This document shows positions 4,122 to 11,428 of a stretch of 64,000 bases of DNA, piece after piece. Position 1 is the stretch's first letter, and every line of letters begins with the position of its first letter. Where the stretch lies: assembly GCA_025558095.1 (NCBI GenBank), contig JAIVFI010000004.1:62001-126000 (forward strand), written 5' to 3'. Origin of the DNA: Hyaloraphidium curvatum SAG 235-1. Its lineage: Eukaryota; Fungi; Monoblepharomycota. Below the pieces are notes generated by a model. It saw nothing but the letters and a program-made list of their open reading frames with translations. It did not search any database and was not told the DNA's origin. The position numbers and the translations under genes were made by a program.

Positions 4122-7053
4122 TCACCTGACAAGCACCTCCTCCACATACTTCATGCTCGGATCGGCCTTCCACAGCGTCACCAGCGCGTCCGCGCACCCG
4201 GCCGCCGTGCGCAGATGGTTCCCGATCCGCCTGAGCAGGGCCACGTGGTGCTGGAACCTGACGACGCACTCGCGCGCGCGACAGCGGACAAACTCGGGCA
4301 CCTGAGCCGGCGGGGCGGCGGAGGATCCCGGGGCGGGGTCGGCGGGGACGAAGGAGAGGCCGGGAAAGAGCGGGTCGGCGGCCTTGGAGGAGACCGAAAC
4401 CGCATCGTCGTCCGCGTCCCCCTCGCCCCCCTTCTCCGCCGCCGCGATGCAAGCCATGGCCAGGTCGCGCAGCGCGGAATGGTTCGAGATGTCCCTCGTC
4501 GAGTAGTGCAGCGACGCCCCCGTGCGGCCGTCCCCGCGGGCAAGCGCGACCAGCTGCCGCAGCTCCTCGAGCCAGATCGAGGCGGTGTAGTACAGCCCCG
4601 TGACCAGGTTCGCCGGCGGCGCGAGGTACGGGAACCAGCCTGCCGACTGCGGCCCCGGCCCGCTCCCGCCGCCGGCCCAGCGCAGCTCCACCGCCAGCGC
4701 GAGGTCCGTGATTCGGCGGGCGCACTGCAGCGCGGATCCGTAGTCGTCCGAATCCACCCACCGCACCTCGTCCGTCACGCACCGCAGGGAATGCATCTCA
4801 GGCCCGCGGACGACGAAAAGCGCGCAGTGGTAGAGCCACAGGAGCACCGCCCACTCGACGTCGAACGTGCCCGCGGCGAAATTCTCCCTCCCCCCTTCGG
4901 CGAACCTGACGAACCGCACCGCGCCCAGCCCGTCCCTCCATTCGCGGTCGGCGGCATCGTTCCCCGGCTCCGACGGCGGCCTCGACCCGATCGTGCGCTC
5001 GTCGAGCTGCCGCACCGCGGCGGGCACGCGCTGCCAGTACTGCGTGCGAAGCTCGTCCTCCAGCGCCGCGATCCGCACCAGGAACTCCTCATGGGAAACG
5101 ATGCCGCCCTTGAACCTGCGCATGGTGGAGTATACTGCGCGCTGGATCCGCGCGAGCATCAAAAAGAGCGGGCGGCGGTCTCCCTCCGCAAACGACGTGG
5201 GTATGGCGCGGAGGGCCGGCGAGCAGGGCGCGAGCGAGACGAGCCTCGAGGGCGGGTTAATCCGCTGCGGTAGCAGGATGGCGGGGGTGTTGCTCCCCGC
5301 CATGAACCACGCGTAGTCGTTGCAGGGCAGGTCCGCCGCCACGTCCTCCTCCACGATCGCGGCGGGCGCGCCCATCCCCGACACGAAGATCGAGTCCTGG
5401 GCGAACAGCCGCCAGAATGTGCGCCGGCGCTCCTCGTTGCTGATCCACTCGTCCGCCGTCGCCGGGCCGCCGTGGCCCACCTGCACCGGGTCAGCCTGCA
5501 GCCCCAGCCTGCGCGCGAGGGCGAGCGCGACCCCGTGCAGCTGGTGCGCCTTCATGAACTCGCCCTGCTCGACCATGTGCTCCACGCACCACGACATCGC
5601 GATCACCGTCCCCACGTTGCCGTTTCCCGAGAGGACGACGTCGGGGAGGAGCAGCATCACGCGGTCGAGGAAGGCGCGGACGACCGAGCGCGGCCGGAGG
5701 GTGAGCCGCGAGGCGCGGAGGAGGAGCGCGTTCAGGAGGAAGGGGTCGATGCCCGAGGGCGGGGTGGCAGAGAGGTAGGTGAGGAAGTGCGGCAGGTGGA
5801 GGTCGAAGGACGAGGGTTCGATGGTGCGGACCGCGTCGAGGAGGATGGAAGAGAGGTCGGGGTCCGCGGGGAGGGGAGCCAGGGCGTCGAATGGGCCGAG
5901 CTGGCGCGGCACCGGGTTGAAGAAATCGGGCACCCCCGCATCGTGCCCCGCAAAGCTTCCGGCCCAGTGCGCCATGCCCTGCACCAGGGCCGGGATGGGC
6001 GGCGCAGCGGGCTGCACGACCATGTGCGGGGCCGGCAGGGGAAGGGCGACCGTCTGAAGTCCCGCTCCGGTCCAGTCCGGCATGGGGAGGCCTTCAGAGT
6101 CCACGGTCAGAATCTGGCTGCCCGACGTCGTCGAAAGTTGCGCGCTGCTTAGGTACGGGCTGCCCAGCTGGGCCGAGTAGAGGGTCGAAGACGAGCTGCC
6201 GTTGAAATGCTCCTCGAGGCCCGTCGCCATGGTCTGAAGGGACGAGCTGCGGACCGTCCTCGACGCCGCGGTGGGAGACATGGGCAGAGCAGCCATCCTC
6301 ATCCGACCCAAGGCAAAGTCCGATGGCAGGGCGATCTGGATCCCGCCCGATGCTGACCGCACCACCTCGGGCAAGGCAAGGTGGGGCGACTGCGGCCCGC
6401 CGGCGACCTGCCCGCCGTATCCGCCGGCACCCAGCACAAAGAGGGCCGAGGCTGCGTTTGCGGATTCGGCCCTCCGCATCGGCAGCATGGGCTCGTCGAG
6501 GAAGGCCGCCCCGAGTCCGTCCATATCGATGTTGCCCACTTTCGGCGTAACGGAGCCCGAACGGGAGCTTTTCGGGCCGACAGTGACCGGCAACTCCGAA
6601 AGGTTGCTCCGAATAGCCTCCAGCGTCGGCGGGTTCCTGACCAGGCGCTCCCGCACCGGCCCTGAAGGGCGGTTCCTTGGCCGCTTGGGCTTCGTCCCGT
6701 CCTCCGGTTGTTCCAGTTTGACTCTCCCCTTGGGACCCCGCTTCTGCAGCACGGTGGGATAGACGCACTGCAGGCCTTTTTCGGCACAGCGCTCGCAGGT
6801 CGGGCGGTGGCCCGAGCATCGCGAATGGAGGTCGCGGCAGTGGTCGCACCTGGGGCGTGCCGGGCCGCTAGAATCGCGCCGGAAAGTGCGCATCGCGGCT
6901 CACCCACCTCACGGTAATGTATTTGCGCACCTTGCCGTTGGCGTGCGTCTGCACCGCGGGGTGCGGACCTTCGCTCGCCGGCGGCGCGCCGACCGCAGCC
7001 ACAAAACCCCCCGGCTGCGGCCCGGCGCCGGGGAGGACGCCCAGCGCCGCCAT
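4122..7053 (-). CDS. Zn(II)2Cys6 transcription factor with fungal middle homology region
   Basis: CDHCRDLHSRC-x6-CERC-x6-C; EERRRTFWRLF; intron 6850-6907 joins KVRKYITVR to CDHC, so the true start lies upstream of the track's 6893 (7053 or further). Confidence 0.9.
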
Positions 7054-7945
7054 GCGATCGGCCTGCGCGCGCTCCGCCGCCCCGTCCGCCGGAAAAGCCT
7101 CCGCCGGCGACGCTGCCGGTTCCCGCCCCTTTGCTCGCGGCCGCCCCGCGTCGGGCACGAACGCCTCCGCCGGCCCGAGCGGCTGGAAAACCCCACCGCC
7201 GACCGCCTGCAGAGCGTGCTGCACCGCTTCGCCGGCGCCGGACGCAACGGGCGGCACGGTTGAGTTGCAGGTGTGGCCGCGCTGGAGCGGGGAACGTTCG
7301 CGGGTCCACACGGAACATCCTCCGGGCCTCGTCCGCGGATTTACCACCAAGTACACTTCGGATCGCGTGTCGCAACTGTCGCCGTCCACAGCATTCTAGT
7401 CTGTTCTGAATGCCTGATTAGGAGATTGGTTCGCCGAACCCGGGCTCGTTCATCGGCGAGAGCTCGCTTATGGTGAAGGTGGACGTGGCTTCCTCGACGC
7501 AAACAATTCAGATCGCGGTTGCTCGTCACGTCGAAAAGGAGTAATCGAGTAGCTGAGAGGAATTGCTCCACCGATTCCGTACTACTTAGTTTCACTCATC
7601 AAAGGCTTTGTTCGCGCGGAACGACATATTGTCTTCAATCGAACGACAGGGCTTTTTTCTTTACTACAGATACGCTCCTGGGAATGCAGTCCTTCCTTTA
7701 ATCCTTCCTGGCCTCGCGCTGACAATCGGCACCTGTGCCAGCACCTCGCGATCCCGCAGCGCGAACACCGGCTCAACTTCATCTCGCCCTGCTGCTAACC
7801 GCACCGATCGCAGCTGTCAACACGGGACACACATCGGCGGTATGAGATCGGACCAGCAGAAAGCGGTATGGTGGTGCCGCCGGGAAAGGAATCCGAACCA
7901 TCAACCAGCGCCACGCGTGCACGTGGCATCGTCCCATAATGAGCG

Positions 7946-9073
7946 TCACTGCTTGGGCAAAACGATGTCGCCCGGCAGCACGGCGTACCGCGCCTGCTTC
8001 CCCGCCGCCTCGTCCTTGAGCTCCTCCCAGGGCTGCGAAAACCCGTCCGCGAGGGCCGTGTTCACGATCTGCACGTGGAAAGCGATCCAGCAGACGAGCA
8101 AGCCGATCGCCGAGGCTCGGTCCACGGGGACCCTCCGCGCGGGCGCCAGCAGGTGCCCGAGCACGGTCTGGAGGACAACCAGGAGCAGGGCAAAGTACGA
8201 CACGAAAAAGTACTTGTCCAGGAGCGTGAGGGCCGGGGTTTTGGGGATCTCGCTGGCAACGACAAATTTGAAGGTCACGAGCGTCAGGAGGAGCGTGAGA
8301 ATGATCGACATGCGGCCGCCGACGTCCTCGCAGCCCATGAGGAACGCGATCGGCGACAGGCAGACGATGAGGAAGACGATGAGCACGATGTTGTAGAGGA
8401 AGTAGCGCCACTGCCGCTCCACGCGCAGCGACACCGTGATCCTCAGCTCGTCCGACTGGCCGGCCGCGACGGAGGTGCCCACGATCGGGCTGATGGCGCT
8501 CCATCCGGCGACCGAGGGCGAGCACGTGAAGCTCGCCATGCTCCTCCAGTCGTGCTTGTCCGGCACGTAGTTCGGGGCCTCAGAAACTGCTCGGAACTCC
8601 TTGGTCTTCAGGCAGATTCGGATGGTCAGAAACTGCCGGTCAAACGGGAACCGATCCAGCTCGAGCTCCTCGTACAGCACGGCCTTGAAGTGGATCATCT
8701 CGCTGACGACACTGTTGCGGACGCGGAACACGGGCGGTCCGAAGAGCGAGAACTCGACCGCGTTCTCGAACACGGCGTCAGGATCCACCGGCTGGTTCGC
8801 GCCATCGTCGTCGGGCGATTCGAACTTGGCGTCCTCCCAGAAAAAGTTCAGATATCCGGAGATTGCAAATTGCTGCGCGACGGGGTCGATGGATTCGAGG
8901 CGGCAGTTCAGCGAGAACCAGACGTCGGTCCTCTTCCCGAACGTGGCCGTTGGTGTCGGCAGCTCCTCGGACGAGGCCGCGCGCGTCAAGTCCCCCGATG
9001 CAGTGCCGTCCACGACACGAGTGCCGCGGAATCGAAGCTGGGCATCCGGTTCTGCGATGGCGATGGCGCTCAT
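7946..9073 (-). CDS. Pentameric ligand-gated ion channel subunit, Cys-less (Pro-loop) type
   Basis: GYLNFFWED, FPFDRQ loop without flanking Cys, pre-M1 VERQW, four TM helices, M2 RMSIILTLLLT, M2-M3 IPK, LTLLD; intronless. Confidence 0.9.
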   Translation of the reverse strand: MSAIAIAEPDAQLRFRGTRVVDGTASGDLTRAASSEELPTPTATFGKRTDVWFSLNCRLESIDPVAQQFAISGYLNFFWEDAKFESPDDDGANQPVDPDAVFENAVEFSLFGPPVFRVRNSVVSEMIHFKAVLYEELELDRFPFDRQFLTIRICLKTKEFRAVSEAPNYVPDKHDWRSMASFTCSPSVAGWSAISPIVGTSVAAGQSDELRITVSLRVERQWRYFLYNIVLIVFLIVCLSPIAFLMGCEDVGGRMSIILTLLLTLVTFKFVVASEIPKTPALTLLDKYFFVSYFALLLVVLQTVLGHLLAPARRVPVDRASAIGLLVCWIAFHVQIVNTALADGFSQPWEELKDEAAGKQARYAVLPGDIVLPKQ

Positions 9074-9249: not shown

Positions 9250-11428
9250 TCAAATTTTAGCCTGCATGATCTGGTCCTGGCCGAAGAGCTCCTCCTTGAT
9301 CCTGATGTGAGGAGCCTTCTTGGAGGCGACCTGCGAATAAGAAAGAGATTAGAACGAAAAGAGCACGGAGAATAGGGCTGCAACGCACCTTCTCGATGTC
9401 GGCGATGGTGACGCCGCGGGCCTCTGCAAACGCGCACAACAAGTCAGCCACCACACCCTCGCCACGGCGCATCGAATCAACTAACCAACGGCGGGGTTGT
9501 AGCCGAAGCGCTCCTTCCAGGTCGGGGGAGCGGGGGCGGGGCCGAAGGCCTTCTTGTACAGCGTGCAAACAACAACGCCGCCGAGACCGACCTAGAAAAG
9601 GATCGTAGAATAAGTAGCAAGCGACAAACGAACGATCGACAAGCCCACGTTGTGCTGCAGGGCAAGCTTCGCTCCTTCAACCTGACGAGGGCCCGCCCAG
9701 CCGCGGAGCTGCCAAGAAAGCTCACAACACTCGTAGTGAATTCCGTGTCAGTCCTCCTCTCCCTGAAGTCCGAGCACAAGTCCCACCTGAGCCAGACCGG
9801 TGGCACCGAGCGGGTGCCCCTTGGAGATCAGCCCGCCCGAGCCGTTGATGACCTGGGTGCGCTTGGGGTTCATCCCGGGCTCGCGGACCTTGGGGTGGTG
9901 GCCGGCGCCGGACTTGACCCAGTCGCTCGCCTTGCCGGGCTCGCAGAGCTCGAGGGCGTCGATGGTGATGAGCTCGTTGCCTGAGAAGCAGTCGTGCAGC
10001 TCGATCACGTCAACGTCCGAGGCCTTGATGCCGGCCTCGGCGTAGACCTGCTTGATGGCCTTGCGGGTCATGTCGGCGCCCTGCGGTGGCGTGCAGGTGA
10101 GCTTCCTTGTCCAGCACGAGCAAAACCCAACCATTCAAAACGCACCGCAATCTCCTCCAGGCTCTTGGCGTTGCCTCCGACGGCGAACGGCTTGCCCGAG
10201 TCGGTGGCCATGGCCTGGGCCACGATCTCGACGGCCTGGGCCTCGAGGCCGTGGGCCTTGACGAAGTCCTCGGAGCACACCACGGCGGCGGCTGAGCCGC
10301 ACGAGGGGGGCGAGCAGTGCAGCAGGGTGGCGTTCTTGTAGATCGGGCGGGCCTTGCGAACGTCCTCGAGCGACGAGTGGTGGCGGAACTGTGCGTCGTC
10401 AAGAAAAAGACGGAGACGTTAGCAACGGCTACGGCACGTCCACCACCGCTGTCCACGCACCTGCGAGTAGGGGTTCAGCTGCGAGTGGTTGTGGTTCTTC
10501 GACGCGATGTAGTCCATCGCGGCGTCGTCCTGGCCGTTCTTCTCGCAGTACTCGAGGGCCGCGTTGGTGAAGATCTGCGGGTTCCTGGGCGCCGACGTGA
10601 AGGGCGCGAGCTCGTTCATGATCACTGGGGTGGGGGATCGGCGTCAGTCCCTCTTTCATGCCGTGAGGGGGATGGCGCTGCTCACCCATCTGCTGGTCCA
10701 TGGTCGGGGTGCGCTCGGGGAAGTTGCCCTTGAGGGGACCGGGGTTCATCTTCTCGAAGCCGACAGCGAGGGCGCCTGTGCGCGCAAACAATCATCTTGT
10801 TAGCAAGCAATCGCAACAAGCCGGCCGAGGCACGCACAGTCGTAGAGCCCGCCGGCGACGGCCTGCCGGGCGAGCAGCAGCGCGGTCGAGCCGGTGGCGC
10901 AGGCGTTGGTCGTGTTGATGATGGGGATCTGGGTCGTGCCAAGCTGGTACAGGGCGCGCTGGCCGTAGCACGAGTCGCCGTAGACGTAACCGGCGGTCGC
11001 TGCGGGCGGATGCGCGTCAGACAGTGGAAGCGGAACGAGACGCGGGGAAGTGCCCACCGAACTCGATGTCATCAAAGTTGATGTTGGCGTCGGTGAGGGC
11101 CTTGGTCGCGGCCTCGACGGCGTACTCGGTGTAGTCCTTCTTGGGCTTCAGGCCGGGCTTGTCGAAGGTGGTCTACCAAAGCGAAAGGATGAAGCCTGGC
11201 GGCGACCTGTGGAAAGATACCCAAGCTCACCACTGGAAGGAGAAAGCGTGGTAAGCGACATGAAACATACCCTGGCGACCGCTGAAACTCACTTCCGACC
11301 CCGACGACTGTAGATCCGGGCGAGGGTGGCGGGCGGCGACAGAGGGCATCGGTCAGCCAATTGTCCACCATTAAACGCCTCGAAACAACGCAATACGCAC
11401 CGTAAACCTTCCTGCCGTTCTTGGGCAT
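9250..11428 (-). CDS. SCP2: SCP2-type (SCPx) thiolase, multi-exon, PTS1-like C-terminal AKI
   Basis: [40 protein letters not shown]; last exon ...DQIMQAKI*. Confidence 0.92.

Follow-up and report, generated by a model that had tools for sequence, protein, structure and literature searches.

The window analysed here is the whole 64,000-nucleotide stretch of Hyaloraphidium curvatum DNA. H. curvatum is an aquatic, early-branching fungus of the Monoblepharidomycota. The following genes are discussed:

7946..9073, minus strand: channel gene, a single exon encoding a 375-aa subunit of a pLGIC (a pentameric ligand-gated ion channel) of the Cys-less Pro-loop type, with no signal peptide
4122..6893, minus strand: downstream neighbour, a Zn2Cys6/Fungal_trans transcription factor (profile match; context only)
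9250..11400, minus strand: upstream neighbour, an intron-containing thiolase (Thiolase_C match; context only; outer end approximate)

The channel ORF (7946-9073, minus strand) starts with ATG, is intact with zero frame breaks, and its 375-aa product is identical to a public protein on a 957,334-base contig. The single-exon ORF between the Zn2Cys6/Fungal_trans factor and the thiolase agrees with the original prediction of an intron-free gene with fungal flanks. The possibility of a non-fungal host, raised there as a reason for doubt, was not borne out, since the host is a fungus and the codon usage is host-like. GC3 (0.88) and codon index (0.73) of the channel gene resemble those of the neighbouring fungal transcription factor, whereas the genes of its relatives have GC3 values of 0.52-0.72. 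Judged by its sequence context, the channel is a genuine H. curvatum gene in a true fungal genome; contamination appears unlikely because of the fungal neighbours, the close spacing to the thiolase, and the host-like GC3 and codon index. The last thiolase exon, as read from the sequence, appears to stop 176 bp before the channel ATG, which leaves limited room for an upstream signal exon. No hydrophobic stretch was found in any frame of these 176 bp, and an upstream signal-peptide exon is unlikely. That last thiolase exon (9250-9330, minus strand), on the same strand as the channel and 176 bp before its ATG, appears to end in AKI, a PTS1-like peroxisomal signal.

The encoded protein is divided as follows:

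8930..9073, minus strand: N-terminal tail (aa 1-48), polar and disordered, pLDDT about 30, no signal peptide by hydropathy
8414..8929, minus strand: beta-sandwich ligand-binding domain (aa 49-220), no N-glycosylation sequon, three Cys, basic residues R152, K156 and R211
8627..8671, minus strand: Pro-loop (aa 135-149), FPFD at 8639-8650, Cys positions occupied by Glu135 and Leu149
8339..8410, minus strand: M1 (aa 222-245), conserved pre-M1 Arg220, 14' Pro absent, Pro241 present
8249..8323, minus strand: M2 pore helix (aa 251-275), 0' R, 2' S, 6' T, 9' L, 13' T, 15' K, 16' F, 20' S; preceded by E-5' D-4' V G G-1'
8156..8224, minus strand: M3 (aa 284-306), after Pro277 of the M2-M3 loop
8051..8143, minus strand: short M3-M4 link and M4 (aa 311-341), from the structure model
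7949..8050, minus strand: C-terminal tail (aa 342-375) with a subclade-conserved F-x-x-P-W-x-x-x-K-D-E motif, on the ligand-domain side

We compared the sequence with the pLGIC hallmarks defined in Table 1 of Jaiteh et al. (2016; PMC4795631). The [F/Y]PxD motif with its invariant Pro is present as F142-P143-F144-D145. Counting from this motif, the two Cys-loop cysteine positions hold E135 and L149, and the disulfide pair is absent. M2 carries R254 at 0', T260 at 6' and L263 at 9', exactly as predicted and in the same register as GLIC. The pre-M1 Arg (R220), the beta9 Trp (W191) and the M2-M3 Pro (P277) are also present. The 14' Pro of M1, a loss not mentioned in the original prediction, is replaced by I232, with a Pro at position 241 instead that is common to 71% of the subclade. 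The 14' Pro is 77% conserved in the superfamily and not obligatory (PMC4795631).

Profile and fold analyses gave a consistent picture of a beta-sandwich followed by four transmembrane helices. The protein matched Pfam PF02932 (Neur_chan_memb) with 30.2 bits against a cut-off of 28.1, while the match to PF02931 (Neur_chan_LBD) was weak (12.1 bits) and below the cut-off, so that the expected profile hits were obtained for the membrane part and not for the ligand-binding part. Residues 57-333 aligned with GLIC (E 7e-15). The AlphaFold2 single-chain model (pLDDT 72) has a disordered head of 45 residues, a beta-rich domain and four long helices, and its top Foldseek matches were GLIC and ELIC (E about 1e-17, 5e-18 for GLIC; probability 1.0). 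The model helices at 284-306 and 311-341 reproduce the very short M3-M4 linker noted earlier. The N-terminus is not hydrophobic, with a best 11-residue hydropathy of 0.79 compared to 2.2-2.9 in paralogues, in accordance with the predicted lack of a signal peptide. By motifs, profiles and modelled fold, the protein belongs to the pLGIC superfamily as a Cys-less member and is not a Cys-loop receptor, as originally proposed.

The query shares with GLIC (Gloeobacter) and ELIC (Erwinia/Dickeya) the fold over aa 57-333, the lack of a Cys-loop disulfide, a minimal M3-M4 link and a hydrophobic 9' gate, and has a 16' Phe as in ELIC. Identity is only about 20-22%, and unlike these channels the query lacks a signal peptide, the M1 Pro and a -2' Glu, and has Lys at 15', an extra C-terminal tail and eukaryotic relatives. 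The suggested likeness to GLIC and ELIC thus holds for the best structural matches, but it reflects the set of crystallised proteins, as the nearest named relatives are protists. With animal Cys-loop receptors (nAChR, 5-HT3, GABA-A and glycine receptors) the protein has the superfamily fold and coupling residues in common (Foldseek TM 0.62 to a GABA-A receptor), whereas it has no disulfide, signal peptide or large M3-M4 domain, neither a GEK nor a PAR filter, and Lys156 at the position equivalent to the loop B Trp. The hydrophobic N-terminus and aromatic-box ligand domain of the animal type are missing, and the pocket is basic. Eukaryotic Cys-less Pro-loop receptors, as far as the published passages on them go (PMC4795631; PMC9874803), resemble the query in the Cys-less FPFD loop, pre-M1 Arg, M2-M3 Pro, acidic pre-M2 region and short M3-M4 link; the query differs in occurring in a fungus and in having Gly at -1' and -2'. 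The Atlas clusters nearest to the query include molluscan, rotifer, xenacoelomorph and diatom clusters and one that is mostly bacterial. The query is probably a member of the eukaryotic Cys-less group that Jaiteh et al. described.

Because the claim rests on distribution, a large HMMER search was chosen to find relatives. Searched exhaustively, it yielded 179 clusters at E below 1e-30; a profile word search added no further relatives, and a metagenome scan returned the P0002 locus only. The nearest relatives are metagenomic proteins (51-52% identity), at least one of them on a eukaryote-looking contig, followed by Amoeba proteus (47%) and Paulinella. Foraminifera, chlorarachniophytes, Picozoa and dinoflagellates are further named members of the clade, and none of the approximately 15 nameable proteins among 150 relatives is fungal or prokaryotic. 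In the tree, a check that the original prediction had proposed, the query fell with protists and not with bacteria. It is placed in a clade with Amoeba proteus, Paulinella chromatophora and metagenomic proteins (support 100/99) whose inner branching order is not fixed, and also groups with foraminifera and chlorarachniophytes in a tree built without Jaiteh's own reference sequences. Direct transfer from bacteria is not supported, as the named close relatives are all eukaryotic. Both ancient transfer from a protist and retention with loss elsewhere fit the tree, which is unrooted and has few named tips, the patchy distribution and the single exon slightly favouring transfer.

Some relatives have unusual architectures. 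P0032, P0034, P0036 (Symbiodinium natans) and P0038 (Prorocentrum cordatum) are each one polypeptide of 2,000-2,700 aa with five or six pLGIC-matching stretches. The pLGIC units of P0032 and P0036 pair one-to-one, which suggests a natural concatenated heteropentamer. P0032 and P0034 also show weak N-terminal NUDIX matches without a signal peptide, an arrangement reminiscent of TRPM2. A weak C-terminal match to TB2/DP1/HVA22 (ER-shaping, REEP-like) at aa 469-542 of Paulinella chromatophora P0028 hints at ER localisation for the subclade.

At least 11 pLGIC loci, spread over six contigs, were detected in the H. curvatum genome (31.9 Mb, 55 contigs searched), and three head-to-head pairs are among them; besides the query there are at least 10 pLGIC genes on 5 other contigs. 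Further Cys-less loci lie at:

contig C6, 45168-47961 and 861776-864055
contig C1, 280041-282360
contig C37, 166117-168935
contig C39, 459632-460393
contig C27, 103211-103906

One paralogue, on contig C6, shares 97% identity with a protein of H. curvatum at NCBI, and several paralogues had already been named by automatic NCBI annotation. Most form one family with a C-terminal extension past M4; the very divergent C27 gene may represent a third pLGIC lineage. Paralogues were used as single exons or database proteins, with exons not joined. The query shares 22-28% identity with those that it matched. Those with readable starts have hydrophobic, signal-like N-termini, and the database paralogues carry sequons. 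The signal-bearing family (NCBI proteins P0017-P0024) consists, like the query, of Cys-less FPFD pLGICs from the same fungus, but unlike the query it has signal peptides, sequons, introns in the membrane part and a conventional charge bias. A single clade of the query and this family was rejected (p-AU 0.009), so that the tree analysis assigns the pLGIC genes of the fungus to at least two origins. The only close relatives of the paralogues that were found lie on two Logan contigs, L031 (SRR23967301) and L032 (SRR26194948), with members of 53-55% identity nested in the signal-bearing family; these contigs have a GC of 55-56% and fragmented gene calls suggesting introns, and possibly come from other monoblepharid-like fungi. 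A search of prokaryotic genomes with paralogue patterns of low sensitivity, which does not prove absence, gave no match. Two other H. curvatum loci, C4:610019-610366 and C5:906925-907209 (L035, L036), match Lig_chan PF00060, an ionotropic glutamate receptor-type channel domain, above the cut-off. L031 likewise has a Lig_chan gene (6975-8708) in the vicinity of its pLGIC gene.

The lack of a signal peptide had led to the suggestion that the topology might be inverted, and clade-wide sequence features point in this direction. With hydropathy windows as a crude stand-in for a signal-peptide predictor, only 3 of 106 full-length clade members had a signal-like (two) or transmembrane (one) N-terminus, compared to 9 of 10 comparison proteins. 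Fewer than 25 residues precede the first strand in 29 of the 106, and transcript-derived ORFs of Amoeba and Paulinella that are marked complete also lack a signal. In several relatives a PH (P0087, P0095), SAM (P0064, P0126) or CAP-Gly (P0098) domain is fused directly to the N-terminal side of the ligand domain; all of these are cytosolic domains. Four of these five fusion proteins have no hydrophobic segment before M1, P0095 being borderline at 1.62, and one PH fusion has a clean start after AT-rich DNA, beside a RICTOR gene.

Charge and cysteine content also differ. In 93% of 134 clade members the side of the ligand domain carries more Lys+Arg than the opposite side, a bias seen in none of nine signal-bearing proteins, a small set picked for signal peptides in which seven belong to one family. 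The net charge of the M3-M4 loop is -1.6 in the clade versus +1.0 in the comparison proteins, and the ligand domain contains a mean of 3.4 Cys in scattered places versus 0.3. The p-values overstate the topology case, because the members of the clade have a common ancestry and a single profile was used to select them. Sequon depletion was uninformative in the clade (116 observed, 112 expected). The charge bias of the query itself is weak (6 versus 4 Lys/Arg), and its M3-M4 link contains three Arg, which is what a cytosolic loop would have. Taken together, the missing signals, fused cytosolic domains, flipped charge bias, acidic M3-M4 loop and Cys content indicate that channels of this protist-type clade are probably inserted inside-out, with a cytosolic ligand domain, which would account for the missing Cys-loop disulfide. 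For the query protein itself we consider inversion a reasonably good, if far from certain, expectation.

The binding site was examined at pocket positions that we assigned by presumed nAChR numbering, counting from FPFD and Arg220. The loop B Trp-equivalent K156 is Arg in 85% of the subclade, and R152 and R211, the equivalents of the nAChR K145/D200 pair, are conserved in 100% and 93%, respectively. Loop C has no aromatics, and basic residues at loop B and beta10 replace the aromatic box, which makes an amine ligand unlikely. An anionic ligand is predicted instead of the amines included in the screen proposed originally. In the pore, the anion-type PAR motif with Pro at -2' is absent (-2' G, -1' G, 0' R). 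The query has no acidic residue at -1' or -2', the -1' Gly corresponding to Asp in 55% of the clade, whereas E-5' and D-4' are present. With no PAR motif, the retained E-5' and D-4', and the clade Asp at -1', a cation-leaning or weakly selective pore is more probable than an anionic one.

These features suggest the following mechanism. Without a signal peptide, the 220-residue beta-sandwich would fold in the cytosol and M1 would act as an N-in signal anchor. The pore would be built of five subunits, probably as a homopentamer since the subunit has no close paralogue, with its gates at 9' Leu and 16' Phe. A cytosolic, probably anionic ligand of the carboxylate, phosphate or nucleotide type may bind between subunits at the basic R152/K156/R211 cluster, with the FPFD loop, Arg220 and Pro277 transmitting this to the pore so that it opens; the pore would be cation-leaning or poorly selective and lie in the plasma membrane or an endomembrane. 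We therefore lean, with moderate confidence, toward a widespread branch of eukaryotic pLGICs, extending into fungi, that is inverted and opened by an intracellular anionic messenger acting on a cytosolic ligand domain.

A conventional orientation would require translocation of the ligand domain with no cleavable signal, M1 serving as a reverse or internal signal, and the channel would then sense external pH or small molecules like GLIC or ELIC. These two are indeed the best structural matches, the M3-M4 link of the query is itself basic, and to our knowledge all characterised pLGICs are so oriented. We nevertheless judge this arrangement unlikely, as relatives have PH, SAM and CAP-Gly domains, which are of a cytosolic type, in front of the ligand domain, the direction of the charge bias is reversed throughout the clade, and translocation of a folded domain of more than 200 residues without a signal is rare. 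The protein could also be an accessory subunit or one that does not conduct, or its gating could depend on voltage, lipid or tension instead of a soluble ligand. The missing M1 14' Pro, the -1' Gly where 55% of the clade has Asp, the 15' Lys and the lack of an aromatic box would fit such a role, but the core coupling residues are all retained apart from the M1 Pro, the subclade shows the conservation at loop B, loop C and beta10 that a binding site would have, and no close paralogue is available as a partner (22-28% identity), which makes it rather improbable.

An origin as a contaminating or chimeric protist sequence, or as a dead recent insert, we consider highly improbable. The single exon, the amoebae and rhizarians as nearest named relatives and the absence of any other named fungus seen in the clade are what such an origin would give, but the gene sits 70 kb inside a 957-kb contig, with fungal genes on both sides and 176 bp from the thiolase stop, its ORF is intact, its GC3 and codon usage are those of the host and not of its relatives' genes, and other pLGIC genes occur on five further contigs. 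The preferred reading remains a probably inverted, ligand-gated channel that belongs to the fungus.

The survey of Jaiteh et al. (2016) detected no pLGICs in Fungi (PMC4795631), in agreement with the statement that these channels are classically reported absent there, and its text nowhere mentions a signal peptide. In the published passages on the schistosome Cys-less set, the domain is taken to be extracellular and no function is assigned (PMC9874803). Our literature search, which had incomplete coverage, found no report of fungal or inverted pLGICs. Likewise, characterised fungal orthologs, which would have lessened the novelty, were not found in the literature; the paralogues are annotated automatically at NCBI. 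With respect to the literature searched, fungal pLGICs are new, although automatic annotation already shows them.

The finding removes the stated absence of pLGICs from fungi, as an early-diverging fungus has at least 11 such genes of at least two origins. The clade-wide case for an inverted topology is the more valuable point and is cheap to test; the compact, intron-free 375-aa subunit offers an easy test case for topology, electrophysiology and cryo-EM. If the branch is inverted, this would explain the fusions with PH, SAM, CAP-Gly and NUDIX-like domains, and a textbook extracellular-ligand fold would also be an intracellular-ligand channel across protists. The same may then hold for the Cys-less receptors that molluscs and flatworms have and that are still uncharacterised; this would explain their orphan status and call for screening ligands from the inside.
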